A DNA stretch of 64,000 nt, from NCBI GenBank assembly GCA_026770705.1, contig JANJGN010000323.1, positions 558,001-622,000 of the forward strand, read 5' to 3'. The notes beneath the pieces are model-generated. The model saw only the letters and a list, made by a program, of their open reading frames with translations, had not been told where the DNA came from and made no database searches. Within the stretch, counting starts at the first letter, position 1, and each line of letters opens with the position of its first letter. Shown one piece after another: positions 773 through 63,734 of the stretch. The DNA comes from Isurus oxyrinchus. Taxonomy: Eukaryota. Made by a program: the position numbers and the translations under genes.

Positions 773-1054
773 ACGGACCACGGAATCTCTTAATTACTTC
801 TCTGGATATGATTAACGTTTCATCGATCAATATAATTGAGGGGAATTCTGCAGTGATAATCTGCTCTGTCGAGAGCTTCCCAGCTTCTAACCTGACGTGG
901 CAACATCTTAATGTCCCAATAAACAGAACAAGTTCCAACAATGAGCTGTGGTTGGTGATTCCTCACGTTACATCCAGGGACACTGGAGACTATCAGTGTG
1001 TGGCAGAGAATGAACATGGAGCAGTGGAGGGATTCATAACCATCACTGTGGAAT
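773..1054 (+). CDS. Gene 1 (inhibitory Siglec-like): C2-set Ig exon a
   Basis: tttttag acceptor, 282 nt, phase 1/1, GTGAGT donor at 1055; encodes GPRNL...IICSVESFPASNLTW...DTGDYQCVAENEHG...ITVE with the Ig C-W-C pattern. Confidence 0.92.
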
Positions 1055-1545
1055 GTGAGTGTACACAGAATGCAACATCTCTCTCAGATTTGAACACATA
1101 TACACAAATGCACACCCACACGCACACACAAGCACTCACTGCACTGGAGTCTCGGTATCAGCTCCAATTCTGGATGGAACGAAGGTAAACTACAGATCAA
1201 CAAGTCCCTGAATTGGATGAGCAACCTCCTGAACAGAGAATTCTATATTTACCCCTCAGTGCTCCATCGATCAAATACAATCATTGCCTGTCAAGCCCTT
1301 GGGGACATCCTGAGGATGTGAAAGCAAATTCCTTTCATTCTAGGTGGACAGCGCCTCTACTGGTGGGAGAATGTAACTGCAGTTTGACTGTTTACATAGG
1401 CAGTGCCCATTATAAATTTGACAGTGGAAGTTATATGGAGTGGAGGGACCTGGCTATGCATACAGACATCAGATACAGAGAGATAATGCATGGAGTCTTG
1501 CAGTAAACTGTGCTTGCTCACATTAAACACTTGATTTGTTCTTAG

Positions 1546-1827
1546 ATGCTCCACAGAATCTCTTATTTACTTCTCTTGATATGATTAACGCTTCATCGAT
1601 CAATATAATTGAGGGGAATTCTACAGTGATAATCTGCTCTGTCGAGAGCTTCCCAGCTTCTAACCTGACGTGGCGACATCTTAATGTCCCAATGAACAGA
1701 ACAAGTTCCAACAATGAGCTGTGGTTGGTGATTCCTCACGTTACATCCAGGGACACTGGAGACTATCAGTGTGTGGCAGAGAATGAACATGGAGCAGCGG
1801 AGGGATTCATAACCATCACTGTGGAAC
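1546..1827 (+). CDS. Gene 1: C2-set Ig exon b (tandem duplicate of exon a)
   Basis: ttcttag acceptor, 282 nt, phase 1/1, GTGAGT donor at 1828; YAPQNL...ITVE, nearly identical to exon a. Confidence 0.92.
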
Positions 1828-2637
1828 GTGAGTGTGGAGATACATTTGTTTGTTTGTTGTCTCCGTGGTCTCCGTGGAGCCATTGGGATCGTGTTGTTTT
1901 TAATCCAGTTTTCTTCAATCCTCGCTCAGTCCACGTTATCCACACATCCAATTTTTCCTCTCCCTTTCTGTTTTTGCTCTCAGTTTCTCCTTCAATGGTT
2001 GTGAGGACAAGGCTGTCAGGTCTTCGTTTGCAATCTCCATACTTGACGACCTTTCTCTCTCTAACTGTCCTGAACAACCCTTTTAATTGCTGAACTTCTC
2101 ATTCTTTAATTGATAAATATTATATATAAATGTTACATGTTGAAATGCAATACCTGTATTCATAAATTGCTTAGAAATTACTAAACATTCAACAGCCAAT
2201 GAAGCATTATCGAAGTGAGCACAAATTTGTAATGAAGGAAACACAGGTACTGATTTGTGCACAGCAAGATCCCACAAACCACCGTGTGATAATGACCTGA
2301 TAGTCGATTATTTCAGTGAGGCTGGTTGTTACATGTGTAGAGACTACATACCCTTTAGGGAGGGAAGCATGTCTCGATGTGGATGTGACTCCAGTCTCAG
2401 ACACCAACATGGTTAACTCACACCTGCCCTCTGAACTGGTCTCCCAGTTTGGGACAAACCAGTGGTTCAGGAGGAAGACCCCCCACCACCTTCTCAAGGG
2501 GAAACTAGGGATGGACAATAAATGTCAGCATTGCCCGAGAATGAGTATTTAAACACTGAGTGAGTGTATCGCTTCTCGAGATACATCGGAGCATCATTGT
2601 AAACCTGTAGTGCAGTAATTAATGGCTGTTTTTACAG

Positions 2638-2734
2638 GTAGAGACTCCAGTAAATGGACAGTAGGATTGTTCACGGCTGGGATCATGTTGAGTGTTTTCC
2701 TGGCTGGAATCTTCATCTTCATCTGTGTGAGAAA
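2638..2734 (+). CDS. Gene 1: transmembrane exon
   Basis: tttacag acceptor, GTAAGT donor at 2735, phase 1 to 2; RRDSSKWTVGLFTAGIMLSVFLAGIFIFICVRK, uncharged TM followed by a basic stop-transfer. Confidence 0.9.
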
Positions 2735-3249
2735 GTAAGTCTGGAGATTTAACTTGATTTTAATATAAACATTTGCTTCAATGCTCTTTCCTGAAGTCGG
2801 TGATTGTTTCCCTTGGGATCAGCACCAGGTCCCTCTCTGTAAGTGATCCCTGTGTCCACTCTGATCCGGAGAGAACCTTTCATTGTCCTGTATCCAGGTA
2901 AACGATCACGAGACCCAGAGATTCCTCACTCTGCACGATTACTCCTGGATTGATATTTGCTTCAATGTTCTTTCCTGAAGTCGGTGATTGTTTCCCTTGT
3001 GTTAAGCGCCAGATGCCTCTCCGTAACTGGTCTCTTTATCCGTTATGATCCAGAGAGTGTTTTTCATTGCCCGTTATCCAGATGAATAATAATCAGTTGC
3101 TGTGATCTGGAAGGCGCTGCCTGAAAGGGAGGTGGAAGCAGATTCAATAGGATCTTTCAAAAGGGGAATTGGATAAATACTTGAAGGGGGAACATTTGAA
3201 GGGCTATGGGGGGAAGAGCAGGGTTGGAGGGCGGGTCAAAGATATGGCG

Positions 3250-3505
3250 TGTCATTATAATGATATTATACCTTGGGCTTATTTACTGTACAAGAAAGAA
3301 AGCACCAATCGCTCACAGGGTTTGGGCGAGAATGTTGTCGGTTTGTTCATCAAGACTCGGCACGAGAACAGTTATACACACGGATAAAGATTGGAGGCAT
3401 CAGAGCTGTGAGTGTGTGCTCTGCTCAAAGCAAAAGTGAAACTAAGATTGGATCACATGACACACTTCCATTATAGTGATGTCACGCTGATACCCCTTAT
3501 TGGAA
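3250..3505. mobile_element. Solo LTR-like fragment related to the LTR at 49138-50626
   Basis: Shares 'aaagtgaaact...gatcacatgacacacttcc...gtgatgtca' with 49305-49325 and 50564-50600. Confidence 0.5.
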
Positions 3506-3611: not shown

Positions 3612-3693
3612 GAGAAAGACAGCGATGGAGGAGAGAGTTTCAGGGACCAGTGACATTGCATTGACCCCCAGGTCACTCTCTGTGAAGCACCAG
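3612..3693 (+). CDS. Gene 1: cytoplasmic exon 1
   Basis: ttgcag acceptor, CAG|GTACAG donor, phase 2 to 0, fits between the TM and terminal exons; (K)RKTAMEERVSGTSDIALTPRSLSVKHQ. Confidence 0.8.
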
Positions 3694-3905: not shown

Positions 3906-6900
3906 TGTCAGAACTGAGGGAGTGCTGCACTGTCAGAGGGTCAGTACTGAGGGAGTGCTACACTGTCAGAGGGTCAGTACTGAGGGAGTGCTGCAATGTC
4001 AGAGTGTCAGTACTGAGGGAGTGCTGCACTGTCGGAGGGTCAGTACTGAGGGAGTGCTGCACTGTCAGAGTGTCAGTACTGAGGGAGTGCTGCACTGTCG
4101 GAGGGTCAGTACTGAGGGTGTGTTGCACTGTCAGAGGATCAGTACTGAGGGAGTGCTGCACTGTCGGAGGGTCAGTACTGAGGGAGTGTTGCACTGTCAG
4201 AGCGTCAGTACTGAGGGAGTGTTGCACTGTCGGAGGGTCAGCACTGAGGGAGTGCTGCACTGTCAGAGGGTCAGTACTGAGGGAGTGCGGGACTGTCAGA
4301 TGGTCATTACTGAGGGAGTGCTGCACTGTCAGAGGGTCAGTACTGAGGCAGTACTGCACTGTCGGAGGGTCAGTAGTGAGGGAGTGCTGCACTGTCGGAG
4401 GGTCAGTACTGAGGGAGTTGTGCACTGTCAGAGTGTCATTACTGAGGGAGTGCTGCACTGTCGGATGATCAGTACTGAGGAAGTGCTGCACTGTCAGCGG
4501 GTCAGTACTGAGGGAGTGCTGGACTGTCAGAGAGTCAGTACTGAGGGAGTGCTGCACTGTCGGAGGGTCAGTAGTGAGGGAGTGCTGCACTGTCAGAGGG
4601 TCAGTATTCCGAGAGTGCTGCACTGTCAGAGGGTCAGTACTGAGGGAGTGCTGCACTGTCAGAGGGTCAGTATTGAGGGAGTGCTGCACTGTCGGAGGGT
4701 CAGTACTGAGGGAGTGCTGGACTGTCAGAGAGTCAGTACTGAGGGAGTGCAGCACTGTCGGAGGGTCAGTAGTGAGGGAGTGCTGCACTGTCAGGGGGTC
4801 AGTACTGAGGGAGTGCTGCACTGTCGGAGGGTCAGTAGTGAGGGAGTGCTGCACTGTCAGAGGGTCAGTATTGAGGGAGTGCTGCACTGTCAGAGGGTCA
4901 GTACTGAGGGAGTGCTGCACTGTCAGAGGGTCAGTATTGAGGGAGTGCTGCACTGTCAGAGGGTCAGTACTGAGGGAGTGCTGCACTGTCAGAGGGTCAG
5001 TATTGAGGGAGGGCTGCACTGTCAGAGGGTCAGTATTGAGGGAGTGCTGCACTGTTGGAGGGTCACTAGTGAGGGAGTGCTGTACTGTCAGAGGGTCAGT
5101 ATTGAGGGAGTGCTGCACTGTCAGAGGGTCAGTATTGAGGGAGGGCTGCACTGTCAGAGGGTCAGTATTGAGGGAGTGCTGCAATGTTGGAGGGTCAGTA
5201 GTGAGGGAGTGCTGCACTGTCAGAGGGTCAGTATTGAGGGAGTGCTGCACTGTCAGAGGGTCAGTATTCCGGGAGTGCTGCACTGTCAGAGGGTCAGTAG
5301 TGAGGGTGTGCTGCACTGTCAGAGGGTCAGTATTGAGGGAGTGCTGCACTGTCAAAGGATCAGTATTGAGGGAGTGCTGCACAGTCAGAGGGTCAGTACT
5401 GAGGGAGTGCTGCACTGTCAGAGGGTCAGTATTGAGGGAGTGCTGCACTGTCAGAGGGTCAGTATTGAGGGAGGGCTGCACTGTTGGAGGGTCAGTAGTG
5501 AGGGAGTGCTGCACTGTCAGAGGGTCAGTATTGAGGGAGTGCTGCACTGTCAGAGGGTCAGTATTCCGGGAGTGCTGCACTGTCAGAGGGTCAGTAGTGA
5601 GGGAGTGCTGCACTGTCAGAGCGTCAGTACTGAGGGAGTGCTGCACTGTCAGAGGGTCAGTACTGATGGAGTGCTGCACTGTCAGAGGGTCAGTATTGAG
5701 GGAGTGCTGCACTGTCAGAGGGTCAGTATTGAGGGAGTGCTGCACTGTCAGAGGGTCAGTATTGAGGGAGTGCTGCACTGTCAGAGGGTCAGTACTGAGG
5801 GAGTGCTGCGCTGTCGGAGGGTCGGTACTGAGGGAGTGCTGCACTGTCAGAGGGTCAGAACTGAGGGAGTGCTGCACTGTCAGAGGGTCAGTAGTGAGGG
5901 AGTGCTACACTGTCAGAGGGTCAGTGCTGAGGGAGTGCTGCACTGTCAGAGGGTCAGTACTGAGGGAGTGCTGCACTGTCAGAGGGTCAGTAGTGAGGGA
6001 GTGCTGCACAGTCAGAGGGTCAGTGCTGAGGGAGTGCTGCACTGTCAGAGGGTCAGTACTGAGGGAGTGCTGCAATGTCAGAGTGTCAGTACTGAGGGAG
6101 TGCTGCACTGTCGGAGGGTCAGTACTGAGGGAGTGCTGCACTGTCAGAGTGTCAGTACTGAGGGTATGCTGCACTGTCGGAGGGTCAGAACTGAGGGTGT
6201 TTTGCACTGTCAGAGGATCAGTACTGAGTGAGTACTGCACTATCGGATGGTCAGTACTGAGGGAGTGTTGCACTGTCAGAGCGTCAGTACTGAGGGAGTG
6301 TTGCACTGTCGGAGGGTCAGCACTGAGGGAGTGCTGCACTGTCAGAGGGTCAGTACTGAGGGAGTGCGGGACTGTCAGATGGTCATTACTGAGGGAGTGC
6401 TGCACTGTCAGAGGGTCAGTACTGAGGGAGTACTGCACTGTCGGAGGGTCAGTAGTGAGGGAGTGCTGCACTTTTGGAGGGTCAGTACTGAGGGAGTAGT
6501 GCACTGTCAGAGTGTCATTACTGAGGGAGTGCTGCACTGTCGCAGGGTCAGTACTGAGGGAGTGCTGCACTGTCGGATGTTCAGTACTGAGGAAGTGCTG
6601 CACTGTCAGCGGGTCAGTACTGAGGGAGTGCTGGACTGTCAGAGAGTCAGTACTGAGGGAGTGCTGCACTGTCAGAGGGTCAGTACTGAGGGAGTGCTGC
6701 ACTGTCAGAGGGTCAGTACTGAGGGAGTGCTGCACTGTCGGAGGGTCAGTACTGAGGGAGTGCTGGACTGTCAGAGAGTCAGTACTGAGGGAGTGCAGCA
6801 CTGTCGGAGGGTCAGTAGTGAGGGAGTGCTGCACTGTCAGGGGGTCAGTACTGAGGGAGTGCTGCACTGTCGGAGGGTCAGTAGTGAGGGAGTGCTGCAC

Positions 6901-8622
6901 TGTCAGAGGGTCAGTAGTGAGGGAGTGCTGCACTGTCAGAGGGTCAGTATTGAGGGAGGGCTGCACTGTCAGAGGGTCAGTATTGAGGGAGTGCTACACT
7001 GTTGGAGGGTCAGTAGTGAGGGAGTGCTGCACTGTCAGAGGGTCAGTATTGAGGGAGTGCTGCACTGTCAGAGGGTCAGTATTCCGGGAGTGCTGCACTG
7101 TCAGAGGGTCAGTAGTGAGGGTGTGCTGCACTGTCAGAGGGTCAGTATTGAGGGAGTGCTGCACTGTCAGAGGGTCAGTATTCCGGGAGTGCTGCACTGT
7201 CAGAGGGTCAGTAGTGAGGGTGTGCTGCACTCTCAGAGGGTCAGTAATGAGGGAGTGCTGCATTGCCAGAGGGTCAGTATTGAGGGAGTGCTGCACTGTC
7301 AGAGGGTCAGTACTGAGGGAGTGCTGCACTGTCAGAGGGTCAGTACTGAGGGAGTGCTGCACTGTCAGAGGGTCAGTGCTGAGGGAGTGCTGCACTGTCA
7401 GACGGTCAGTATTGAGGGAGTGCTGCACTGTCAGAGGGTCAGTACTGAGGGAGTGCTGCACTGTCAGAGGGTCAGTAGTGAGGGAGTGCTGCACTGTCAG
7501 AGGGTCAGTACTGAGGGAGTGCTGCACTGTCAGAGGGTCAGTACTGAGGGAGTGCTGCACTGTCAGAGTGTCAGTACTGAGGGAGTGCTGCACTGTCAGA
7601 GGGTCAGTATTGAGGGAATGCTGCACTGTCAGAGAGTCAGTACTGAGGGAGTGCTGCACTGTCAGAGGGTCAGTACTGAGGGAGTGCTGCACTGTCAGAG
7701 GGTCAGTATTGAGGGAGTGCTGCACTGTCAGAGGGTCAGTATTGAGGGAGGGCTGCACTGTCAGAGGGTCAGTATTGAGGGAATGCTGCACTGTTGGAGG
7801 GTCAGTAGTGAGGGAGTGCTGCACTGTCAGAGGGTCAGTATTGAGGGAGTGCTGCACTGTCAGAGGGTCAGTATTCCGGGAGTGCTGCACTGTCAGAGGG
7901 TCAGTACTGAGGGAGTGCTGCACTGTCAGAGGTCAGTATTGAGGGAGTGTTGCACAGTCAGAGGGTCAGTATTGAGGGAGTGCTGCACTGTCAGATGGTC
8001 AGTACTGAGGGAGTGCTGCACTGTTGGAGGGTCAGTACTGAGGGAGTGCTGCACTGTCAGAGGGTCAGTACTGAGGGAGTGCTGCACTGTCAGAGGGTCA
8101 GTAGTGAGGGAGTGCTGCACTGTCAGAGGGTCAGTGCTGAGGGAGTGCTGCACTGTCAGAGAGTCAGTACTGAGGGAGTGCTGCACTGTCAGAGAGTCAG
8201 TACTGAGGGAGTGCTGCACTGTCAGAGAGTCAGTACTGAGGGAGTGCTGCACTGTCAGAGAGTCAGTACTGAGGGAGTGCTGCACTGTCAGAGAGTCAGT
8301 ACTGAGGGAGTGCTGCACTGTCAGAGGGTCAGTATTGAGGGAGTGCTGCAGTGTCAGAGGGTCAGTAGTGAGGGAGTGCTGCACTGTCGGAGGGTCAGTA
8401 CTGAGGGAGTGCTGCACTGTTGGAGGGTCATTAGTGAGGGAGTGCTGCACTGTCAGAGTGTCAGTATTGAGGGAGTGCTGCACTGTCAGAGGGTCAGTAC
8501 TGAGGGAGTGCCGCACTGTCAGAGGGTCAGTACTGAGGGAGTGCTGCACTGTCAGAGGGTGAGTACTGAGGGAGTGCTGCACTGTCAGAGGGTCAGTACT
8601 GAGGGAATGCTGCACTGTTGGA
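3906..8622 (+). repeat. 33-bp minisatellite (GTCAGTACTGAGGGAGTGCTGCACTGTCAGAGG), roughly 140 units, intronic
   Basis: Direct tandem repeat; gives 11-aa periodic ORFs in several frames on both strands. Confidence 0.97.
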
Positions 8623-8808: not shown

Positions 8809-9057
8809 GGTAAACAGAACGTGCTGATTACTGAGCCCCGGAACACAACCAGAGACACAACTAGTGAGGGGGAGACCCCAGCTCCCCGGGGTCTCTCTGA
8901 AGGTCCAGTGGGAGGCGATGTTGGACATGGGAACCCCGACAATCCCGACGAGCTTCTCTACGCCAACATCAACTTTTCAAAGCTGCCCGGCGGTGACAGG
9001 ACTGTGCACAGGAGCGAGGACACGGAATACGCACAGATCAGGTTCCAGAAAAACTGA
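8809..9057 (+). CDS. Gene 1: terminal cytoplasmic exon with ITIM and ITSM-like motif
   Basis: ctctgtag acceptor, phase 0; GKQNVLITEP...DELLYANINF...EDTEYAQIRFQKN*. The LxYxxI plus TEYxxI pair is the classic Siglec inhibitory tail. Confidence 0.92.
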   Translation, partial: GKQNVLITEPRNTTRDTTSEGETPAPRGLSEGPVGGDVGHGNPDNPDELLYANINFSKLPGGDRTVHRSEDTEYAQIRFQKN

Positions 9058-9350: not shown

Positions 9351-10240
9351 TGGTACGAAAGTATAATAATTTGCTTAATATTTTCCTGGTTTGTTGTAAA
9401 CTAGGGTTATGGGTGTGAGTGTAGATGGGTCTGTCTGTGTAGTTTAATTACATCTGGAGTCAGGTAGACTGCAAGTTTGAGATTATCAAAAGAAGCTAGA
9501 TGTAGAAATGTACTTGAAATGCTAATGAGAACACATGGAGGCTGCCTTAGCATGTAAGGTGTGAAAGGGTTGTCTAGATTTCAAAGGGATGTTGGTCTGT
9601 TTAGGACAAGCCCAATAAGCAAAGCTAAGGAGTTTTTTTTTTAAATTTTACCCAAACTTCATTGACAATATTGGCAACATGAAAGTTTATATTATGGGAA
9701 AGGTACAGTTCCAAAGAATTTACACATCAAAGAGAGAGAAACATTTATAAAGGAGAATGAAAGGCTATGTTGGGGGCCATGTAAGATCTAACAGGAGTGT
9801 GTGAAACAGGCTTGAACAAGCCTCCAGGCATTTGTGCTTAAGTCTGTTATGTTCAGTAAATAAAGTTGGAGAAATCCATTTAGAATTCCAGTGTCAAGTG
9901 TGTGCTGTGTTAACTCGCTGGGTTTGTTTTTAATCTAAAATCTTATTTTGGACTGTTGCCTTAAACAGGCTCTGTAATTGGGAGTCAGGTTAATTAGGAA
10001 TTTGAGAATTTATATTAGTTGTAACTATCCGTGGTATTATGTATGTACTTGAAATCTTTTATTTTGTTAATAAATATCTTAATCCAATTTTTAAAATCTC
10101 TAAAGGTTGTGGTCATTTCATTACTCCTGAATTCAGTGCACGCTTCTTGTAATAAATACAAATTGCAAAACTATTGTGTTAGCATGACCAATTTTCCCTT
10201 GTGGATTTGGAGCACCAAGCACACATCATCTGCCATGTCA
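9351..10240 (+). mobile_element. Solo-LTR-like insertion splitting the LINE
   Basis: Interrupts the RT frame (GIRG|GKTL); its 3' part matches inverted copies at ~50631-51030 and ~60476-60850. Confidence 0.7.
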
Positions 10241-11315
10241 CCGGGAAAACTCTCCACTTGTTGGATTCATACCAAGTACAAAGGAAGGTGGTTGTGGTTG
10301 TTGGAGGTCAGTCATCTCAGTTCCAGGATATCACTGCAGGAGTTGCTCAGGGTAGTGTCCTAGGCCCAACCATCTTCAGCTGCTTCATCAATGACATTCA
10401 TTCTATCAGATGGTCAGAATTATGGATGGTCGCTGATGATTGCACAACGTTCAACATCATTCATGACTCATCAGATGCTGAAACAGTCCATGTCCAAATG
10501 CAGCAAGACCTTGACAATATCCAGGCTTGGCCTGACAAGTGGCAAGTAACATTCATGCCACACAAGTGCCAGGCAATGACCATCTCCAACCAGAGAGATT
10601 ATATCCATCTCCCCTTAATGTCCAATGGCATCACCATTGCTGAATCCCCCACTATCAACACGCTGGGGGTTACCAATGACTAGAAACTGAACTGCACTAG
10701 CCATATAAAAACTGTGACTATAAGAGCAGGCCAGAGGCTGGGAATCCTGTGGTGAGTAAATCACCTCCTGACTCCCCAAAGCCTGTCCACCAACCTCAAG
10801 GCACAGGTCAGGAGTGTGATGGAATACTCGCCACTTGCCTAGATGAGTCCAGCTCCAACAACACTCAAGAGGCTCGACACCGTCCAGGACAAAGCAGCCC
10901 CGCTTGATTTGCACCCCATCCACAAACATTCTCTCCCTCTACAACTGACGCACAGTGGCAGCAGTGTGTGTACCATCTACAAGATGCAATGCAGGGAGTC
11001 ACCAAGCCTCCTTAGACAGCACCTTCCAAACACATGATCACTACCATCTCGAAGGACAAGGGCAGCAGACACATGGGAACACCACCACCTGGAAGTTCCC
11101 CTCCAAGTCACTCACCATCCTGACTTGGAAATATATCACCGTTCCTTCACTGTCGCTGGGTCAGAATCCTGCAACACCCTCCCAAACAGTTCTGTGGGTG
11201 TACATACACCACAGGGACTGCAGCAGCTCAAGAAGACAGCTCACCCCCATATTCTCAAGGACAATTAGGGATGGGCAATAAATTCTGGCCTAGCCAGTGT
11301 CAGTGAATAAATACA
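10241..11315 (+). mobile_element. LINE RT 3' part and tail (degenerate)
   Basis: GVAQGSVLGPTIFSCFIND...VADD...QQDLDNIQAW; ends in attagggatgggcaataaat...gaataaa. Confidence 0.9.
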
Positions 11316-11825: not shown

Positions 11826-11859
11826 ATATCCTGACAGCAAACTGCGATTAAGTGCTTCC

Positions 11860-13996
11860 TACAACTTAACTAACAGACCAAAGACATATTGAACTGTCTG
11901 AAAGTGACCTGTTTTTCAAAGAAATACAAGATTGTACACAGATCAAAAATGGCTGACACAAGTCATCTGATTGCTGATACTGTGAAGTTGATCACTTCTC
12001 TGGAAAGGTTCAAATGAATTGCAATGCAGACCTTTTGCATGGAAGTTCATGCCTGGTGTGTGTCAGTGTTCACTTCAAACAGGGACACTCTTAAAAGGAA
12101 GGCATTAAAATGCAAAGTGCTGGACTTTGATCAGCTGTAGTTCTATCAAAACAGTAGGAACTGTTCACCAAGCGGATAATCATCAGCCATTCAAAACCCC
12201 CGGTAGAGGATACAATACCCCCATCTCCTGTTGATTTATATTTTGAAATGCATCAAATGTTGCAGAGATGCAAAGATAAAAAATGGGAATACTTGGTCTA
12301 TAACAATGAATGCAAAACATGCTGATTGAATCCCCTTCAGGAATATACAGACAGGAGTTAAACAAATGGTTCTGCCCAGCAGATATAAGAGAAAGGAGGA
12401 GGAAAAAGAAATAAGGCAGTCTTCCACAAACACTGCTGGAAAAGAGCAGAAATGATTTCTCCCTCCCTCTCTTTCTGTCCCTCTCTCTGTCTCCTCTCTC
12501 TCTCTCTCTCTCTCTGTCTGAAGCTAACAGAGAGTCGTCAACAACGTGCAAGTCTGAGCCAGATGAAATACAGGAATCTGCCGAAAACCAACTAATTTAA
12601 AACAGCTTCAAACTTCACAGCCGACGCTGCAGTTCAAGCAAATGACTCTTAATTTTTTATTGGACTCTATAATTATTTTACCTCTGATATCTGTGTGTGT
12701 GTTTATGTGTGTGTCTGTGTGTGTGTCTGTGTGTGTGTCTGTGTGTGTGTCTGTGTGCCTGTCTGTGTGTGTGTGTGTTGTGTCCGTGTGAGCGTGTCTG
12801 TGTGTGTGCATTTGTCTGTGTGTGCGTGTGAGCCTGTCTGTGTGTGTGTCTGTGCACCTGTCTGTGTGAGTGTGTGTATGTGTGTGTAATTAAAAAATTA
12901 AAATGTGTCCCATTTTTATTATTTTTTCTCCAGTTAGGTAACTAATAAACTGACTCTTTCTTTGACTCAACCAAACGTGGTTTAATTGGTTCATTCTTAA
13001 CAACCAAAGACACATGTTTTGGAAATTGCTTTTGGGGGAAGATATATTTTCAACCCTTTTTTTCAACCAACCATAATTACCTGTTAAACCTCTTAACCTC
13101 ATTACTACTGAATTCAAAGCCCACATCTCAAAACATACAAGTTGGAAATTGGTTGCGACAGTTGTTTCAAGTTTCCCTCCAGGATTTGAACAGCTCAGCA
13201 TTTACCATCTGTTATGTCATAATAGAGCTTCCTTCAACTTAACCAACGAGCCAAAAACGTATTGAACTGTTTAAAGGAGACCTGTTTTTTAAAAGTACAA
13301 GATTAGGCACTGATCAAAAATGGCTGTCACGAGTCACCTGATTGCTGATACTGCAAACTTGATCACTTCTCTGGAAAGCTTCAAATGAATTGCACTACAG
13401 ACATGTTGCATGAAAGTTCTCACTGAGGTGTGTCAGGGTCCACTTGAAACAGGGGCTCCCTAAAAAATGCAAAGCGCTGGACTCTGATCACTGTAGGTCT
13501 ATCAAGGTAATGGGAACTGCTCACCATGCACTAATTCATCAATCATTCAAAACCCCTTGTGGAGGATGAAATGTCTCCATCTCCTGTAGATTTATATCTT
13601 GAAAAGCACCAAATGTTTCAGAGATGCAAAGATCAAAAAAGGGATTACTTGGTCTGCGACAATGAATGCAAGACATGCTGATCGAATTCCCTTTGGGAAT
13701 ATACAGACAGGAGTTTAACAACAGGTTCTGTCAAGCAGATATAAGAGAAAGTAGGAGGAAAAAGAAAGATGGCAGTCACTCAAATACACTGCTGGAAAAG
13801 AGCAGAAATTCTCCCTCTCTCTCTCTTTCTGAAGCTAACAGAGCATCTTCAACAAAGTGCAAATCTGAATCAAATCACCACCAGGATGCCACAGGAAACC
13901 AATTAACCTTGAACAGCTGCAAACGTCAACAATCTATTTCTCAAAGACAAGCAAAGGTATTAATCATATATTCTTTTACATTTTTATTGGACTCTA
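11860..13996. repeat. Two diverged direct copies (~11860-12670 and ~13235-13996) of an unclassified ~0.75-kb repeat, separated by (TG)n and AT-rich DNA
   Basis: Collinear matches such as 'gatcaaaaatggctg...gtca(t/c)ctgattgctgatac' and 'ggaatatacagacaggagtt'. Confidence 0.75.
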
Positions 13997-14261
13997 NNNN
14001 NNNNNNNNNNNNNNNNNNNNNNNNNNNNNNNNNNNNNNNNNNNNNNNNNNNNNNNNNNNNNNNNNNNNNNNNNNNNNNNNNNNNNNNNNNNNNNNNNNNN
14101 NNNNNNNNNNNNNNNNNNNNNNNNNNNNNNNNNNNNNNNNNNNNNNNNNNNNNNNNNNNNNNNNNNNNNNNNNNNNNNNNNNNNNNNNNNNNNNNNNNNN
14201 NNNNNNNNNNNNNNNNNNNNNNNNNNNNNNNNNNNNNNNNNNNNNNNNNNNNNNNNNNNNN
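13997..14261. other. Assembly gap (265 N)
   Basis: Run of N. Confidence 1.
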
Positions 14262-50626: not shown

Positions 50627-50630
50627 AAAG

Positions 50631-51254: not shown

Positions 51255-51623
51255 TTGGACTGTCACAAGAATGGGAAAGTAACACTCCACGAGAGGTGAC
51301 AGCGCAGAAAGGTTCATGTGTACAGATTCCATGTCATTACAATTACCCATCACATTTGTTAGAGAAAACACATGTCGGAATCTGGAATATGAGGAGGGAC
51401 AAATGGAATACATTGTCTATAGCCTTTCACTCCAAGGATCACAGTCACGAGTTATCACGGTTCCACCATCGGACCCGGCTGTCTGGAGACCTGAAAGATG
51501 GCGACTGTTCCCTGATTATAAACAACATCAGACGGGAAGATGCAGGATTTTTTTTTTTCAGAATAGAATTTGACAATGGTCGGAGCCATAACTATTACCC
51601 TGAAACCCTGCTTCAGGTTTCTG
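51255..51623 (+). CDS. Gene 3: Siglec V-set exon
   Basis: ccccag acceptor, GTAAGT donor, 369 nt, phase 1/1; GSCVQIPC (two Cys), GDCSL (E-strand Cys) and EDAGFFFFRIE (Arg in the F strand, no canonical Cys) are Siglec hallmarks. Confidence 0.95.
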
Positions 51624-53345: not shown

Positions 53346-53642
53346 ATTTCACAGATAAACCCACGATATTCCCTGCTGAAATTATTGCAGGAAAGCGTGT
53401 GGATGTAAGCTGCACCTTCAACACAACGTGCAATGGAACAGCAGCACCTGTCTTAACCTGGGACACTCCCACTGACGTACCTGGATCAGTCTCAAACACT
53501 GTAACTCAGCATGGTGTCACTCTGACCTATACTTCTGTTCTGACCCTGATCCCATCACTCAAACACCACGGACACACTCTCAGCTGCAGAGTGAGATATC
53601 CATCTGTTTCATCGGAGCGGACCCTCGTACTAACTGTGCAAG
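53346..53642 (+). CDS. Gene 3: second Ig (C2-set) exon
   Basis: 297 nt, phase 1/1; DFTDKPTI...VSCTFNTTC...LTW...SVLTLIP...HGHTLSCRV; the extra Cys fits the Siglec D1-D2 inter-domain disulfide. Confidence 0.93.
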
Positions 53643-53965
53643 GTAAGTATGGACACCCTTCATTCTACATCAGAATTCCCTCAGCGCTGACCCTCTGACA
53701 GTGCAGCCCGTTCTCAGTGTCCATATTCTCAGGCCACTCAAAGTACTTCACAGTCGATAGAAGTTAACTGATCTTTATTTGATTGTTGCTGAATGAAGTG
53801 ACAAGCTGTCTAAACTTTACAGCTTGCACACGTTATTTTCCATGGCAACACCTCCTCTAATCAGAGACCACTTGCCAACCAATCAGCACTCTCTTCCCTT
53901 TAAATATAAATTGTTGTACATTTTCTGTTGGTAAACCTGCGAGCTGTCATGTTGAGTCCTGCCCT

Positions 53966-54118
53966 GACATCTCAATGTCACAATGAACAGAACAAGTTCC
54001 AACAATGAGCTGTGGTTGGTGATTCCTCACGTTACATCCAGGGACACTGGAGACTATCAGTGTGTGGCAGAGAATGAACATGGAGCAGTGGAGGTGTCCA
54101 TAACCATCACTGTGGAAC
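53966..54118 (+). pseudogene. Gene 3: 5'-truncated third Ig exon (half domain)
   Basis: Nearly identical to the 3' half of the gene 1 C2 exons, donor intact, but first Cys/Trp and acceptor are missing. Confidence 0.8.
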
Positions 54119-55237
54119 GTGAGTGTGCACAGACTTCAACATCACTCTCAGGTTCAAACACTACACAAATACACACAAATATACAGACCTAAGCAGACAC
54201 CTGCAGACACACAATCCCAAATGTATGAGCACACACAAAGACACACTCACAAACAAACACCCTATCACATACTGCCCTGTGGGTTACCTGACCTCCCTCA
54301 GTGCTGCACCAGAGTATTGACCTAGATTCTGGGTTTTGTGTTCCCTTTCATATTTATGGAAGAATATGGAAATTGCAAGGTCTATTACAGACACTCAGAT
54401 GCACAGGGATACTCACAGATACACTCTGCCTCTCCAACTCACTATCCTCCTTTAAGAAGTTTCCTGAAACCTAATCCTTTGACCAGTCACCTGTCCCAAC
54501 TCCTCTTACGTGATTTTGTGTGAAATTTTGTTTGAGTATCTGAGAGTAAGAGAGAGGTGGAGAGGTTTAGGAAGGGAATTCCTGTTGGTGAAAAGCTTAC
54601 ATCATGTTCTCAGCTTTCCAGTGCCCATTTTTCACATGATGTCCAATGTCCATGTTCATAATGGGGATTGCCTATGTAAACGTCACGCTGTAGTTACACT
54701 CTGCCACCAGTGGTGGCACGGTAGCACTTAACCCTTGCATCTCCCAGCTTTTCAAGCAATTTCCCTTCCTAATTTGCTACTATTCACCTCAACCACTCCC
54801 TGTGGGAACGAGTTCCACATTCTCCCCTCTCTCTGGGTAAAGATTGGAATTGTTTATTAAGCGGGGTTGTAAGTCCGTGAGGGAGTCCATCTCGATCCTG
54901 CCCGATTCGCACACGCATCCGAGATGGATTTCCACCCTGCACTAAACGTTTCCAGAATTTTCTACAGCACAATCCTGTACACAGCGATGGAGAGAAACAT
55001 TGGACAGGGAGTCCAACAGCACAATGATCCATTCTCACCAATGTTCCACGCTAAGGGGAAAGTTCCGATTGTCCACTCTTAGAGTGTTTACAATGAAAAC
55101 ATTCATTCCACATTGAATCCCAGTGGATGGGTCAATATTACAGCAAATGTTGCAGTGATATGAAGCTTGATTGTTCAGCCAGAGTGAGAGATTGAAAGCG
55201 GAGAGTCAGTGATGATTTCTTTCTGTGTGTTCTCTAG

Positions 55238-55377
55238 ACAGTGGAGGAGAGATTCTGCACGTGATCCTGATCCTGGGAATACGAGCTGTGATATTCCTTG
55301 TGGCTGTGGTTATCACTATCGCTGGAGTCTGTGTCTGGGAGAGACAAACAGTGACAGGAAGTCGACAGACTGTTTGA
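55238..55377 (+). CDS. Gene 3: TM plus short tail exon with intramembrane Arg
   Basis: tctctag acceptor, phase 1; DSGGEILHVILILGIRAVIFLVAVVITIAGVCVWERQTVTGSRQTV*. Confidence 0.88.
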
Positions 55378-55507: not shown

Positions 55508-56100
55508 GGGAGCCCATTCAGCCCATTGAGTCCATGCTGCCTCTCTGTAGAGCAATCCAGTCAGTCCCATTTCCCCGCTCTATCCCCATATCTCTGCAAG
55601 TTTATTTCCCCTCAAGTATCCATCCAATTTCCATTTGATATCGTTCATCGTCTCAACTTCCACCATCCTCGTAGGCAGCGAGTTCCAGCTCATTACCACT
55701 CGCTGTGTAAAAAAGTTCCTCCTCACATCCCCCTCTGCCCAAAACCTTCAATCTGTGTCCCCCAGTCCTTGTACCATCAGCTAATGGCAACAGCTTCTCT
55801 TTGTCTACCGTATCTAAACCCATCATCATCTTGTACACCTCGATCAGATCCCCCCTCAATCTCCTTTGCTCCAAGGAGAACAACCCCAGCTTCTCCAACC
55901 CAACCCTGTAGCTAAAATCCCTCATCCCTGGACCCATTCTGCTCAATCTCCTCCCCACCCTCTCAAGGACCATCACTTCCTTCCCAAAGTGAGGAGACCA
56001 GAACTGGACACAATACTCTAGTTGTGACCTAACCAGAGCTTTATACATGTTCAGCATAACCTCCCTGTGTTTGTACTCAGTCCCTCGATTTATGAAAAGC
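55508..56100 (-). mobile_element. CR1 LINE 3' fragment in the gene 3 3'UTR region
   Basis: YKALVRSQLEYCVQFWSP...LGLFSLEQRRLRGDLIEVYK; ends in gggctgaatgggctcc. Confidence 0.92.
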
Positions 56101-56453
56101 TTATTCTTTCCATCAGCACAAACAGCAATTTCCAAGCGGACTCCCATCAGCAGACAGAGTGCAATGAAACATCGGCATGCCTGCTTCTTAATGTACGGAG
56201 AGAAACCTGGAACGAGAGATTCTCCTTCTTCTCCTCAGCAAGCTGAAACTTTTCCTTATACCTGGTGCTCCCCAGTCCTGCTGTGTGGACACATCATAAC
56301 CACGGCATTGTCTGGCTGTGTGCAGCCAACATGGTCGAATAGGAATGAACAGAAATGTGACGTTGCTAAACTCTGTTCTTTGATTGGAATGTGCTTTCTG
56401 AATGCTGCACCTTTTTCATGCTGCGATCGATTGTAAGAAGCATTTGGGTTATG

Positions 56454-56801: not shown

Positions 56802-57500
56802 GACAGTGCAGCACTCCCTCTGTTCAGACCCTCCAACAGTGCAGCACTCCCTCTGTTCAGACCCTCCTACAGTGCAGCACTCCCTCAGTTCAGACCCTCC
56901 AACAGTGCAGCACTCCCTCAGTTCAGACCCTCCAGCAGTGCAGCACTCCCTCAGTTCAGACCCTCCGACAGTGCAGCACTCCGTCAGTTTAGACCCTCCT
57001 ACAGTGCAGCAATCCCTCAGTTTATACCTTCCAACAGTGCAGCACTCCCTCAGATCAGACCCTCCAACAGTGCAGCACTCCCTCAGTTCAGACCCTCCAG
57101 CAGTGCAGCACTCCCTCAGTTCAGACCCTCCGACAGTGCAGCACTCCGTCAGTTCAGACCCTCCTACAGTGCAGCAATCCCTCAGTTTATACCTTCCAAC
57201 AGTGCAGCACTCCCTCAGTTCAGACCCTCCAACACTGCAGCACTCCCTCAGTTCTGACCGGCCGACAGTGCAGCACTCCCTCAGTGCCAACACTCTGACA
57301 GTGCAGAACTCCCTCTCAGCTGTCCCTCAAACAGAGCAGCACTCCCTCGCTGCTTATCCTCCATCAGTGCAGCATACCTCAATACTGACGCGCCAACAGT
57401 GCAGCACTGCCTCAGTACTGACCCTCTAACAGGGTAGCACTCCAACAATACTGACCCTCCGACAGTGCAGAACATGCTTAGTATTTATCCTCCAACAGCA
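56802..57500 (-). repeat. 33-bp minisatellite, variant unit (…CAGTTCAGACCCTCC…)
   Basis: Locally homogenised variant of the 33-mer. Confidence 0.95.
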
Positions 57501-58137
57501 TTTTTAAATATAAACCCTCAGAGCCATGGTAGAAATTTGAAGTTAACAAACAGCAAACAGAAAGATCACAGAGTCATGATGAATTGCCAACAGTTTGATT
57601 CTGTTGTAACGCATTGTGAAATTACGCACTCATTCCTACTGCCTGTTTACTCACTCCTTTACTACTTCCCCATTTTGTCTCACAGAGACACATCAACCCT
57701 TTCTCATTAAACACACAGAGGGGCCAGCACAGGAAGAGGTCATTCAGCCCAAGCAGAGCGTGTGGGCAGTTCCTCCCCAGGCGAGCAGTCGGACAGGTCC
57801 TGGGTAAGTAACGGAACGATTGGAATTCACTTCCACGACCAACACCGTCCTTTGTTGATGTTGTGACTTTATAAAGACAGATTCCAATGATTGATGCCTT
57901 TGAAAGATTTCTACTGATTATTGAGATCTGGGTGTGAGGCTCAAGTGTGTTGTACAGAACATCTTTCTAGCTCAAGGGATGAGGGAAGTGCAGAGACATG
58001 AGATTTGGGGGCGTCCTGAGGTGGTGAAAGGTGCTATAGAAATGCAAGTCTTTCATTGTTTTTCTTTTTCAAGCCTTGTAACTCTCTGCAGAGCACCTAT
58101 CATCCCACAGAGAATCAAATTAGTCTGTGAAGACATT

Positions 58138-58775: not shown

Positions 58776-59109
58776 ATTGTCTAAAAGCAGTTCTGATCTC
58801 TGGAGAGCTGTCGGACAAGAGGTGAGGTCTCATTAACTCCTTTCTCTTTCACAGCTTGAGAGTGAGAAGCTGATGAAATATCTGGGAATGGACAATGATC
58901 TTACTTCCTCCTGTCAGTTCTCCAAGCTAATATCATCGTCAGCTCGGACAGATTTATGGTTAATAGTCTTTGTAAAAGATCATTCTTATTGAGCTGTGAT
59001 TGGGAACCGATTCAGCAGTGAGCCAGTGTACAAACTCACACCAAGTCCCATTCACCCATCACCCCTGTGATCACTGATATTCACTGACTCCCTGTCTGAC
59101 AGCAACAGA

Positions 59110-59570: not shown

Positions 59571-60475
59571 ATCAAAATTCAGGGATGAATTAACTCCAAT
59601 AGTCCATTCCCTGAGAGGCCATGATTACATCACAGCAGCATTCAGAATAGACAGAGGGTCCAGCCCTCACACTTCTTGCACAGTTTCACCATAACGAAAT
59701 GAATTAACTGAAAGGTAAACCGTCAGTGTAGAGAGATGAGATATTTACACAGTTTCCCTGTGTATCTTGTAGACACTGTGTTGGGTGGAAGACTGGCTTC
59801 ACTAAACAGGGTCCTGAGGACTATGAGCCAATGTAGAATGAACTTGTCCACTCCTGTGTCCAGGATTCTCTTCTATCCATTGTGATACATTGGGGAGATC
59901 CCTGTGTGTCCTGTAGATGGTCCACACTGCAGCCACTGTGCCCCAGTGATGGAGGGGGTGGATATCGAGTCTAGTGGATCTACAAACCATCCAGAGTTAA
60001 ATATTGATATTTCTCTCCCCAGTTGGACTGTCACAAGAGTGGAAAGGTGACACTCCATGAGAGGTGACAGCGCAGGAATATTCGTGTGTACAGATTCCAT
60101 GTCATTACAGTTATCCATCGTGTCTGGAAAACCAACCACAAATTGGAATCTGGTTTAATGACAAAGTCCTGATAAGATTCTTTATAGCCTTTCACTCCAA
60201 GGATCACAGTCACGAGTTACCACAGTTCCGGCATCGGACCCGGCTGTCTGGAGACCTGAAAGATGGTGACTGTTCACTGATTATAAACAACATCAGATGG
60301 GAAGATGCAGGACCTTATTTTTTCAGAATAGAATTTGACAATGGTCCGAGCCATAACTATTACCCTGTAACCCAGCTTCACGTTTCTGGTAAGTGCTATG
60401 TTATAATTACTCAACAATTCACATTCAACACTCAATGGGAATGAACACAAACTCTGACGTTTACATAATAAGACT

Positions 60476-61545
60476 GTTATGACATGGCAGGTGATGTGTG
60501 CCAGGTGGAGAGAATCCACAAAGGGAACTTGGACAAGCTACCACAATGGTTTTGCCATTTACATTTGTTGAGAGAAGGCTTATGATGTGAATGCATAAGA
60601 ATTGAGTCCACTAACACCTTTAGATATTTTAAAATTATATTAAGAAATGTATTAACAAAAGAAGAAACATTCAAACACATACAGAAGATTACAGTTACTT
60701 GATATTAGAACAAATTCCAAAATTTCTCATTAACCTAATTTCCAACTACACACCCCCTTGAAGGCAACAATCCCAATAAATCTTAAATGGAAATGGGAAT
60801 CCGGCAAGGTTACTGCAGCACCCACTTGACAGTGTAATTCCAAAGTCTTTTAACACACCTATAAGCACTGGAGCAGCAAAAGTGAACAGAAACGTTTTAC
60901 CTAAAAGGACCCATTCCCTGTCTGTTAGATTTCACAGATCAACCCACGATATTCCCTGCTGAAATTATTGCAGGCAAGCGTGTAGATGTAAGCTGCACCT
61001 TCAACACAACGTGCAATGGAACAGCAGCACCTGTCTTCACCTACTGTACCTTTCAAGAAATTCATGTCCCCCTCCCACATAACATTCCATCCTTCTTTAT
61101 GTTGGTTTCTCTCTCTCCAATGTATAAAATCCCACTGTTGCACCTGTCTTGGGAAATACACTTTTCTCATAGTATAAAAATCTTTCATGTTGTCAATATG
61201 GCCCATTCCTTTTGGGAAGAATACACATAATAACCTTGCCCTGGTTATCTTGTTAATTATAAACACCCAACTACCCTTTGACAATCAAACATTCTCTTTA
61301 CTGATCTAAAATTTCATTTACAGCTTTTCTGTGGAACCCTCATCCTAGCTTGTCCATCCCCATTTCAGAAGTCTGCTTTGCACCAAACTCTATTGATAAT
61401 TTTAACCTCACAGTTGATCTGACTCGAATTCAATTAAATCAGACCCACAGACGGAACCATCAAGATTCATTCCCATAAGCCGACAATATTATTCTGAAAA
61501 ACATCACAGTTTCATCACAACATAAAACACAGTTTAGTATAACGC
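60476..61545 (-). mobile_element. LTR-like insertion in the gene 4 V-C2 intron, containing a partial C2 exon copy (60929-61042)
   Basis: Starts tgttatgacatggcaggtgatgtgtgcc, related to 10225-10240 and 50631; absent from the gene 3 intron; right boundary uncertain. Confidence 0.6.
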
Positions 61546-62275
61546 AGAGTCTGATTCTCAATAACCTGGTGATAGCTTCCATTCAGTCCTAAAGCAACCT
61601 CTAATACTCACTTTAATATCAATGATTAAATGTATTGACTGTGTCCATCAATGTTATCAGGTCATCCACTCCCATCTATCTCTAATCTTAGGGCTGTGAT
61701 TTCTGTTTGAACTGATGCTTCACGTTATATTTCTCTAAAAGGATCCATTCTCTGTCTGTTAGATTTCACAGATAAAACCACGATATTCCCTGCTGAAATT
61801 ATTGCAGGAAAGCGTGTGGATGTAAGCTGCACCTTCAACACAACGTGCAATGGAACAGCAGCACCTGTCTTAACCTGGGACACTCCCACTGACGTACCTG
61901 GATCAGTCTCAAACACTGTAACTCAGCATGGTGTCACTCTGTCCTATACTTCTGTTCTGACCCTGATCTCATCACTCAAACACCACGGACACATTCTCAT
62001 CTGCAGAGTGAGATATCCATCTGTTTCATCGGAGCGGACCCTCGTACTAACTGTACAAGGTAAGAACGGACACCCTTCATTATGCATTCGCTGGAACAGT
62101 CTAGATTACGCACAGCAGGATCCCATAGAAAGGTATTCTGATGACAATCAGATAATCTGTTTTTTAAATAAAATGGTGACCAGAATACAATTAATAACCG
62201 TTTCTGAACATTAACACAGGGGCTTTTATGTCCAGCCAAGGGGCTGATAGAGCAGAGCAGGAATCGCAATGTACT

Positions 62276-62872
62276 CACCCCCTGACAGTGCAGCACTCCC
62301 TCAGTACTGACCCTCTGACAGTGCAGCACTCCCTCAGTACTGACCCCCTGACAGTGTAGCACTCCCTCAGTACTGACCCTCTGACAGTGCAGCACGCCCT
62401 CAGTACTGTCCCTCTGACAGTGTAGCACTCCCTCAGTACTGACCCCCCAACAGTGCAACAATTCCTCAGTACTGTCCCTCTGACAGTGCAACACTCCCTC
62501 AAATCTGTCTCTCCGACAGATTAGCACTCCCTCAATACTGTCCCTCTGACAGTGCAGCACTCTCAGTACTGACCCTCCGAGAGCACAGCACCCCTTCAGT
62601 ACTGACCCTCCGACAGTGCAGCACTCCCTCAATACTGTCCCTTTGACAGTGTAGAACTCCCTCAGCACTGACCCTCCGACAATGCAGCACTCCCTCAGTA
62701 CTGTCCCTCTGACAGTGTAGCACTCCCTCAGTACTGACCCTCCAACAGTGCAGCACTCCCTCAGTACTGCCCCTCTGACAGTATAGCACTCCCTCAGTAC
62801 TGAACCTCTGACTGTGCAGCACTCGTTCAGTCCTGACCCTCTGACAGTGCAGCACTCCCTCAGTACTGACAC
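62276..62872 (-). repeat. 33-bp minisatellite array
   Basis: Same unit. Confidence 0.95.
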
Positions 62873-63165
62873 TGGGGAATTTCAGTCTGCACTGTGGGGC
62901 AGGCATCTGCTGAATGGGGTCTTGAACCCCACAAAATTCTACAACATACTGACTCCCTGAGTTCGGGTGTGAAAACCACTTACCCACAGGAGAAACTCCT
63001 GGTTAATGAGTGTCCATCAGTGAGCAGAAATATCACCACAGGGTCAGGATACAACGGGTTAACAGTTCACCAGCATCTCAAAACATGAGCTGCTCTGTTA
63101 CTTTGATCCAACTTCCTCATTTTGTCTCACAGTGACACATCAACCCTTTCTAATTAAACACACAG

Positions 63166-63250
63166 AGGGAGCAGCACAGGAAGAGGTCATTCAGCCCAAG
63201 CAGAGCGTGTGGGCAGTTCCTCCCCAGGCGAGCAGTCGGACAGGTCCTGG
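63166..63250 (+). other. Gene 5 / module D: putative 5' non-coding exon
   Basis: Fifth copy of the 85-nt exon. Confidence 0.6.
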
Positions 63251-63694
63251 GTAAGTAACGGAACGATTGGAATTCACTTCCACCACCAACACCGTCCTTT
63301 GTTGATGTTGTGACTTTATAAAGACAGATTCCAATGATTGATGCCTTTGAAGGATTTCGACTGATTATTGAGATCTGGGTGTGAGGCTCAAGTCTGTTGT
63401 ACAGAACATCTTTCTAGCTCAAGGGATGAGGGAACTGTAGATACTTTGGGGTGTCCCGATGTGGTGAAAGGTGCTATAGAAATGCAAGTCCTTTGTTGTT
63501 TTTCATTCTTAAAGCCTTGGAACTCTCTGCAGAACACCTATCATCCCACAGAGAATCAAATTATTCTGTGAAGACATTGTCTAAAAGCAGTTCTGATCTC
63601 TCGAGAGCTGTTGGACAAGAGGTGAGGTCTCATTAACTCCTTTCGCTTTCAGAGTTTCAGAGTGAGAAGCTGATGAAATATCTGGGAGTGGATA

Positions 63695-63734
63695 ATGATT
63701 GGAAAATCTTACTTCCTCATGTCACTTCTCCAAG
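63695..63734 (+). CDS. Gene 5: signal-peptide exon (gene continues past the window)
   Basis: MIGKSYFLMSLLQ+G|GTAATA, intact. Confidence 0.72.

Follow-up and report, generated by a model that had tools for sequence, protein, structure and literature searches.

Four tandem Siglec-type receptor genes or gene remains in a 64-kb stretch of a shark genome

The stretch of DNA analysed here, referred to as the window (64 kb of contig JANJGN010000323.1), contains four tandem Siglec-type receptor genes or gene remains of a shark, numbered 1 to 4 along the forward strand. Two of the four units look usable, i.e. gene 1, whose 3' part lies in the window, and gene 3. With a probability of roughly three in four, the window is a piece of a large tandem family of CD33-related-like Siglecs in a shark near great white and basking sharks, built from an exon kit with three alternative ends: (a) a tail with an ITIM (immunoreceptor tyrosine-based inhibitory motif) together with an ITSM (immunoreceptor tyrosine-based switch motif), (b) an arginine in the membrane span and (c) a tail with YxN tyrosines. 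A tblastn map made with 13 related shark and ray proteins on both strands of the window placed the family exons exclusively on the + strand and revealed no further family exon. The mapped exons have AG/GT borders and compatible phases. The window includes no neighbouring gene from outside the Siglec family.

In the proposed kit, a leader, at least one Siglec V domain, a C2 domain and I-set domains would be joined to one of the three ends. End (a), a neutral membrane span followed by the ITIM/ITSM tail, would recruit SHP-type phosphatases when phosphorylated and damp the cell. End (b), a buried Arg with almost no tail, would pair with an Asp-bearing adaptor carrying an immunoreceptor tyrosine-based activation motif (DAP12-type or FcR-gamma-type) and have an activating effect on the cell. 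End (c), a neutral span with YxN tyrosines, would most likely dock Grb2-type adaptors and looks partly derived from the ITIM tail. Gene 1 would then be the intact 3' half of an (a) receptor, gene 3 an intact two-domain (b) receptor skipping a truncated exon, gene 2 the tail-only remains of a (c) receptor, and gene 4 would be dead. We infer the adaptor pairing, all signalling outcomes and any arms race with pathogens; a literature search returned nothing specific on DAP12 or FcR-gamma in cartilaginous fish.

Siglec identity of the domains

The V exons of genes 3 and 4 match the Pfam family Ig_CD22 with 31.8 and 33.2 bits, respectively (cut-off 27), as well as V-set, and the exon following V matches C2-set_2. 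Among solved structures the gene 3 V exon matches sialoadhesin best (1.5e-11), then MAG, Siglec-5, Siglec-8, CD33, Siglec-10 and Siglec-7. In the alignment with sialoadhesin, the N-terminal Trp, three Cys (two in GSCxxIPC and the strand-E Cys) and the Arg are all in register. The cysteine pattern of Siglecs, in which a B-E pair within the sheet is joined by an additional V-domain Cys with a counterpart in the first C2 domain, is recognizable from the alignment in GSCVQIPC and DCSLII, which align with the sialoadhesin cysteines, and the putative sialic-acid Arg of FFFFRIE (gene 3) and YFFRIE (gene 4) aligns with that of sialoadhesin YNFRFE. This strand-F Arg is kept in most, though not all, family members. 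An AlphaFold2 (AF2) model of the gene 3 V exon reached a mean predicted local distance difference test score (pLDDT) of 90.3, and its top Foldseek matches are MAG, sialoadhesin, Siglec-7, CD33, Siglec-10 and Siglec-5 (template modelling score, TM, 0.80-0.89).

The V and C2 domains of the close homologue P0009 (P numbers designate homologous proteins), taken together, match CD33 at 1e-27, Siglec-5 at 6e-27, MAG at 1e-19, CD22 at 2e-9 and Siglec-15 at 1e-7. In the same protein the extra C2 cysteine of SCTFNTTC aligns with CD33 LTCSVSWAC. The V exon of the window alone, unlike the V and C2 domains of P0009, ranks sialoadhesin and MAG slightly above CD33, and the C2 exon of the window alone gives a weakly specific match. 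The identification as Siglec-type receptors made in the initial annotation is thus upheld by Pfam Ig_CD22, by best matches to Siglecs among both solved structures and folds, and by the presence of the Arg and the cysteine pattern. From these residues, the shark receptors would be predicted to bind sialic acid.

Three types of ends in the window

Gene 1 is present in the window by its 3' part alone, its V exon lying outside. The preserved part begins with two I-set/C2 exons of 282 nt, both in phase 1-1, C2a (773-1054; Pfam Ig_3/I-set, E 1e-12) and C2b (1546-1827; Pfam match, AG/GT borders), which are 90% identical to each other and of a generic type; C2a has 84-92% protein identity to shark Siglec models. 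A neutral transmembrane exon follows (2638-2734, WTVGLFTAGIMLSVFLAGIFIFICV; 97% protein identity to great white shark P0165), then a first cytoplasmic exon (3612-3693, RKTAMEERVSGTSDIALTPRSLSVKHQ; the same stretch occurs in P0003, P0026 and P0194) and a last exon (8809-9057), whose protein sequence is 83-89% identical to models from basking shark and great white shark. The last exon contains LLYANI, which matches the ITIM consensus, and 23 residues after it TEYAQI, which matches the ITSM consensus, and ends in ...NPDELLYANINFSKLPGGDRTVHRSEDTEYAQIRFQKN before the stop. The phases 1-1, 1-1, 1-2, 2-0 and 0 join the five exons, all open, into a single open frame. The nearest annotated relative is great white shark P0194, 92% identical in the shared exons, which is laid out as leader, Siglec V with YYFRIE, C2, two I-set domains, transmembrane span and tail.

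Gene 3 is intact over 281 codons when a truncated I-set half-exon is left out, with an open frame through leader, V, C2 and transmembrane exons and canonical splice sites. The coding part of the leader exon (45019-45058, MIGKSYFLLSLIQ; leader as in P0003, P0005 and P0009) starts with ATG at 45019 and is followed by a phase-1 GT donor after 45058. The Siglec V-set exon with FFFFRIE (51255-51623; Pfam V-set and Ig_CD22, PDB, AF2/Foldseek) precedes the first C2-set exon with SCTFNTTC (53346-53642; Pfam C2-set_2, covered by RNA contigs with 0 mismatches). The last exon (55238-55377; 78% protein identity to the end of P0006) encodes DSGGEILHVILILGIRAVIFLVAVVITIAGVCVWERQTVTGSRQTV and a stop. Its membrane span ILHVILILGIRAVIFLVAVVITIAGVCVW places an Arg in ILILGIRAVIF and is followed by the 12-residue tail ERQTVTGSRQTV, from which Tyr is absent, as claimed initially.

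The half-exon of gene 3 (53968-54118), which is truncated at its 5' end, was recognized by its similarity to the gene 1 C2 exons. The near-identity that had been noted between them is confirmed, since the alignment with C2b (53966-54127, 162 nt) reaches 96.3% identity and that with C2a, over 213 nt, 91.5%. The half-exon was considered as a working exon of gene 3 and rejected: a TGA stands in frame directly before the start of the homology and there is no in-frame acceptor.

Gene 2 is a tail without a head, formed by a broken Ig relic, a neutral transmembrane exon and three open tail exons with YEN, YAN and YGN. The relic is the 3' end of an I-set exon (35495-35582, 88 bp, frame broken, 82% identical to gene 1 C2). 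The transmembrane exon (36817-36913, WKAGLLGAGICLSVGLSGFFIF) has 97% protein identity to great white shark P0016 and 74% nucleotide identity to the gene 1 transmembrane exon. It is followed by an 85-nt cytoplasmic exon (37670-37754), coding in P0016 and P0176, by tyrosine exon 1 with DEYRGPVYENC (38266-38370), matching the tail of basking shark P0176, and by tyrosine exon 2 (39724-39840, DDLYANCEFAKDSVYGNL and stop). In order, the tail exons contain DEY, VYENC, LYANC and SVYGNL, then the stop. The two tyrosine exons are regarded as duplicates because their first 43 nt including the acceptor are 86% identical. Exon 2 is locally similar to the gene 1 ITIM region (10/17 residues, E 1e-4, NPDNPDELLYANINFSK vs NPDTDDDL-YANCEFAK), so that the YxN tail may be a diverged ITIM tail. 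The last motif, SVYGNL, also matches the ITIM consensus. In the 21 kb upstream of gene 2, mostly satellite, tblastn found no leader, V or C2 exon.

The initial annotation had described a neutral span with ITIM and ITSM-like motifs in gene 1 and a neutral span with three YxN motifs in gene 2, placing them with the Arg end of gene 3 on related immunoglobulin (Ig) exons. The three ends stand as described. The relatedness of the Ig exons they are attached to is carried, within the window, by the gene 2 relic and the gene 3 half-exon; gene 2 has no usable Ig exon, and fuller support comes from other species.

Transcription of the Arg-anchored type

Assembled contigs of public RNA runs were aligned to the window at 95% identity. 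The V, C2 and transmembrane exons of gene 3 are covered 10-100 times as deeply as the introns. In X1 and X2 (one sample/study) and in X6 (second study), the C2 exon is linked to the Arg exon by a GT..AG joint (53642 to 55238) that skips the half-exon. A single contig of X5 (third study) joins 54118 to 55238; it begins inside the intron before the half-exon, so its product would be without a leader. X2 contigs have 0 mismatches over the gene 3 C2 exon and the intron preceding the transmembrane exon. The contigs covering 51548-51549 (X1, X6) all read CC, giving GPFFFR as in the rest of the family, and all covering contigs read A at 55355, unlike the window. An Arg-type Siglec with the 53642-55238 splice is transcribed, from gene 3 or from a near-identical copy. 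The transcription of gene 3 that had been expected is hence borne out for the Arg-type splice, seen in contigs of two studies, which may derive from gene 3 or from a near-copy.

The two positions read as CC fall within 11 consecutive T of the gene 3 V exon (51546-51556), which encode FFFF in place of the GPYFF of relatives. Either an assembly error at the homopolymer or a private allele may account for this stretch.

The receptor family in other elasmobranchs

A full HMMER scan with the V exon returned 1054 proteins at E values up to 1e-3, and the same three tails are found in more than 100 RefSeq models, contributed by about 20 sharks and rays. The close relatives are RefSeq models of catsharks, smooth-hound, basking, great white, bamboo, epaulette, zebra, whale, horn and sevengill sharks, sawshark, sawfish, stingrays, mantas and skates, and their database names are Siglec-5, -6, -8, -10, -11, -12, -13 or -14, CD33-like, MAG-like or CD22-like. 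A search with P0013 gave elasmobranch proteins exclusively, and no named mammalian Siglec is among the best 150 representative matches of the V scan. The close relatives are all elasmobranch with lamniform sharks closest, in agreement with the cartilaginous fish host that had been proposed from the sequence.

The ITIM/ITSM end is common across the family models. The YxN end ([DN][ILV]Y[AE]NC...[SAP][IV]Y[GA]N[VIL] at the protein end) occurs in at least 17 shark and ray models, and basking shark models use both tyrosine exons exactly like gene 2. The Arg end (ILILGIRA) was found in cloudy catshark P0006 and P0155 and in bamboo shark P0019; a search with residues 598-647 of P0006, which correspond to the Arg exon, returned two catshark proteins, this stretch being too short for the size of the database. 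In a V-domain tree of 79 rows, built without mammalian Siglec references, bamboo shark P0019 (Arg) is sister to P0205 (ITIM) with a support of 100/96, and the catshark Arg proteins fall in a 99/95 clade with catshark ITIM proteins. The starred branches of this tree force at least two origins of the Arg label, eight of ITIM and seven of YxN. From the leader up to residue 428, P0019 and P0205 hardly differ; beyond it they diverge. Within the family, single predicted proteins can hold up to six tandem Siglec V domains (P0155, P0002, P0001).

The shark family is one that gene databases already predict. No paper on shark or ray Siglecs was found in the literature search, and the whale shark genome paper merely lists Siglecs among expanded Ig families.

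Alternative explanations

Several observations weigh against the exon-kit reading. The V exon of gene 1 is off the window, and its Siglec nature is taken from the model P0194. In the RNA alignments, the sides of the joint-spanning contigs are short (27-30 letters), and contigs were admitted from 95% identity on, the family being rich in near-copies, with mismatches at 51548-51549 and 55355; the transcripts may come from a near-identical copy instead of gene 3 itself. RefSeq models can fuse neighbouring genes, so that tail swapping may be overstated in the tree. The ligand, adaptor and phosphorylation roles are predictions from motifs in the sequence. Some of these points feed a reading in which the window yields no working receptor from any of its four units and the RNA contigs derive from intact copies at other places in the genome. 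In favour of it, gene 4 is dead, gene 2 lacks a head, gene 3 has a truncated exon and the 11-T run in its V exon, and the covering contigs differ from the window, reading CC at two of these T's (X1, X6) and another base at 55355. Yet the frame of gene 3 is open from leader through V and C2 to the transmembrane exon with canonical splice sites, X2 contigs have 0 mismatches to its C2 exon and to the intron preceding the transmembrane exon, and the five exons of gene 1 are all open, which makes a cluster consisting of nothing but dead units unlikely.

The YxN end may also be inhibitory, given that SVYGNL fits the ITIM consensus. Taken further, the YxN tail would be a second inhibitory tail derived from the ITIM tail, with two outputs in all and no third pathway. 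Not only SVYGNL but also SIYENV, AVYGNI and SIYANV of other species fit [S/I/V/L]xYxx[I/V/L], and the YAN region is locally similar to the gene 1 ITIM region. On the other side, every species retains the Asn at +2 of two or three tyrosines, and this residue is needed by a Grb2-type SH2 site, not by an ITIM. In the middle motif, moreover, the ITIM consensus is lost at both of its positions (D at -2, C at +3) and the ITSM-like TEYxxI is absent from the YxN tail, so a two-output system appears rather unlikely. Genes 1 and 2 could also form a single transcription unit, in which the gene 1 head would be spliced to the ITIM tail of gene 1 or, alternatively, to the YxN tail 35 kb away. Both transmembrane exons have the same start phase, are homologous (74% at the nucleotide level) and follow I-set exons; gene 2 is headless over the preceding 21 kb, yet its four transmembrane and tail exons are open with good splice sites; and read-through splicing between neighbouring genes is seen in basking shark isoforms. 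However, the last exon of gene 1 has its own stop and AATAAA signals 0.8-1.1 kb downstream, the interval contains a 14.5-kb satellite, other satellites and a gap, the decayed I-set relic just before the gene 2 transmembrane exon fits a gene that lost its head, and great white and basking shark YxN models have their own V and C2 exons. A single unit is accordingly considered highly improbable, and separate genes drawing on a common kit with three ends are preferred.

Comparison with known receptor systems

In mammalian paired Siglecs, a tail with an ITIM and a membrane-distal ITSM-like motif is opposed to a basic transmembrane residue with a short tail (PMC4042635; PMC13358205). The shark cluster resembles the Siglec-5/14 and Siglec-11/16 pairs in that neighbouring Siglec genes carry either an ITIM and ITSM-like tail or a basic transmembrane residue and a short tail. 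The likeness to Siglec-5/14 extends to bamboo shark P0019 and P0205, which share nearly identical leader, V, C2 and two I-set domains. In contrast with Siglec-5/14, the types present in the window share an I-set half-exon (96% alike) and no near-identical V domain, the shark Arg exon is a module shared across the family that occurs with at least two V lineages, and the shark family has a third (YxN) end and members with one to six V domains.

CD33 is the best PDB match of the V and C2 domains of P0009, and the cysteine pattern and the Arg are shared with it, although with the V exon alone sialoadhesin and MAG come out slightly ahead. The tail ELLYANINFSK...TEYAQI also resembles the ELHYAS...TEYSEI type of elephant shrew, turtle and frog relatives, as in CD33-related Siglecs. 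Fish, as surveyed in bony fish, regularly have Siglec-1, CD22, MAG and Siglec-15 only and lack CD33-related Siglecs (PMC7226832). Siglec-15 is an activating receptor with a basic transmembrane residue that is conserved in fish (PMC7226832). Like the shark Arg type, Siglec-15 has a basic residue in the membrane span, but this is a Lys instead of an Arg, the V match is weak (E 5e-6 with the V exon, 1e-7 with V and C2), and Siglec-15 is a single conserved gene, not an expanding cluster. The tail of CD22 carries a Grb2-binding YxN tyrosine beside ITIMs. CD22 differs from the shark receptors by a weak domain match (E 1e-3 to 2e-9), and the shark tail has YxN-type tyrosines only and no ITSM. PILR-alpha and PILR-beta form a sialic-acid-dependent V-set pair, one with an ITIM and the other coupled to DAP12 (PMC13358205). 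They appear among the weaker PDB matches of the gene 3 V exon, but at E 8e-5 or worse, and they are single-domain proteins without the Siglec cysteine pattern.

The Siglec design with ITIM, Arg and tyrosine tails is described in the literature for mammals only, and reviews present paired Siglecs as a recent mammalian, mostly primate, response to sialic-acid-mimicking pathogens. A shark and ray family with a brake tail, an Arg partner and a YxN tail would mean that this receptor logic dates to early jawed vertebrates or that it arose twice. The shark family is a natural system for asking how tails swap among binding heads. The value of the present window is limited, as the family is already database-predicted and two of the four units look usable.

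Evolution of the cluster

Birth-and-death evolution, as assumed in the initial annotation, fits the window, which holds a pseudogene, a relic reduced to its tail, a truncated exon and head modules in duplicate. The accompanying claim of gene conversion fares less well. Inside the half-exon of gene 3, only five sites separate C2a from C2b, and the half-exon equals C2b at four of them; the body thus goes with C2b, whereas the 3' flank goes with the intron that comes after C2a. Five informative sites are few, and 96% identity fits a plain recent duplication. In the comparison of gene 3 with gene 4, identity is 87.5% for the V exon, 91.7% and 96.3% for the introns flanking it and 96% for the C2 exon region, and the in-frame indels of the V exon are clustered at 51350-51420. 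Diversification of the V loops, patchy conversion and decay of gene 4 would each be compatible with this mosaic.

The notion of an inhibitory/activating pair is sustained in so far as the cluster contains both an ITIM type and an Arg type and RNA contigs show splicing of the latter. A near-identical pair of binding domains with opposite ends was not seen inside the window, where the V domains of gene 3 and gene 4 share 73% protein identity and that of gene 1 is off the window; such pairs are found in bamboo shark (P0019 and P0205) and in catsharks.

The gene 1 tail ELLYANINFSKL...TEYAQIRF shares its layout with frog ELEYASLDFSKL...VEYSEIK, turtle DLHYASVDFSK...TEYSEIR and elephant shrew ELHYASFIF...TEYSEIK, all from relatives found via the V domain. 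The resemblance to tetrapods was seen by eye, and a local phmmer comparison of the tails gave no significant match. Because frog, turtle and mammal relatives share the layout, the inhibitory tail favours an old lineage over independent invention. Of the two origins previously offered for the system, independent or very old, the latter thus suits the inhibitory tail; the Arg partner was seen in sharks alone. Tentatively, CD33-related-type Siglecs with ITIM and ITSM may have existed in the jawed-vertebrate ancestor and been lost in teleosts, elasmobranchs having independently turned them into the three-way exon kit (brake, Arg anchor, Grb2-type tail) and reshuffled it among heads since before the split of sharks and rays.

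Gene 4 and the head modules

Gene 4 (59.8-62.1 kb), absent from the initial annotation, is a pseudogene. Its leader exon (58880-58925, approximate) is broken by an 8-bp deletion and a change of the donor GT to CT, and its V-set exon (60023-60388; Pfam), whose domain has 73% protein identity to that of gene 3, is interrupted by a change of CGA to TGA at 60058-60060. A partial extra C2-set exon copy, found by sequence similarity (60901-61042), and a C2-set exon with approximate ends (61735-62080; Pfam, tblastn) follow. Within the window, there is no transmembrane exon before the next head module at 63.1 kb.

Copies of the 85-nt exon, which is coding in the gene 2 tail and in great white shark and basking shark models, lie near 42278-42358, 44488-44568, 57723-57803 and 63170-63250, about 570 bp upstream of each leader exon within a head module of 0.8 kb. 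In the basking shark isoforms P0179 and P0193, the 85-nt exon is followed by the leader exon and then by the V exon out of frame, which indicates that the 85-nt exon and the leader exon are spliced together in some transcripts. Two such modules in tandem (42216-43019 and 44429-45236), each with the 85-nt exon and an intact leader, stand upstream of the gene 3 V exon, so that gene 3 has an intact second leader copy at about 42.8 kb. An insertion of 5.4 kb between 45.6 and 51.0 kb is absent from gene 4.

Assembly gap and repeats

The assembly gap, a run of N at 13997-14261, is intergenic, 4.9 kb 3' of the gene 1 stop and 21 kb 5' of the first relic of gene 2. Its surroundings are non-coding repeats with stop codons in most adjoining reading frames. 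The left flank is a copy of 11851-12477 (81% identical) and the right flank resembles 16998-17143, beside an array of a 33-mer. Judging from these flanks and from the tblastn map of the window, the gap interrupts no exon of the Siglec family.

A 33-bp minisatellite in 143 copies (3907-8618) fills the last intron of gene 1 (4.7 kb). It is also found at 14443-14998, 17166-17704, 32241-32786, 56803-57470 and 62271-62870, in both orientations, within and between Siglec genes, and these arrays could be sites for unequal crossing-over. A 43-bp satellite extends over 14.5 kb (17703-32244; 341 copies, 79% matches) with a second array of 0.9 kb at 41178-42112, and a 24-bp satellite in 47 copies (38500-39625) fills the intron separating the two tyrosine exons of gene 2. 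Two open frames, 10201-10683 (+) and 55653-56147 (-), have the look of reverse transcriptase, e.g. MVADDCTTF, and are probably intergenic fragments of long interspersed nuclear elements (LINEs).

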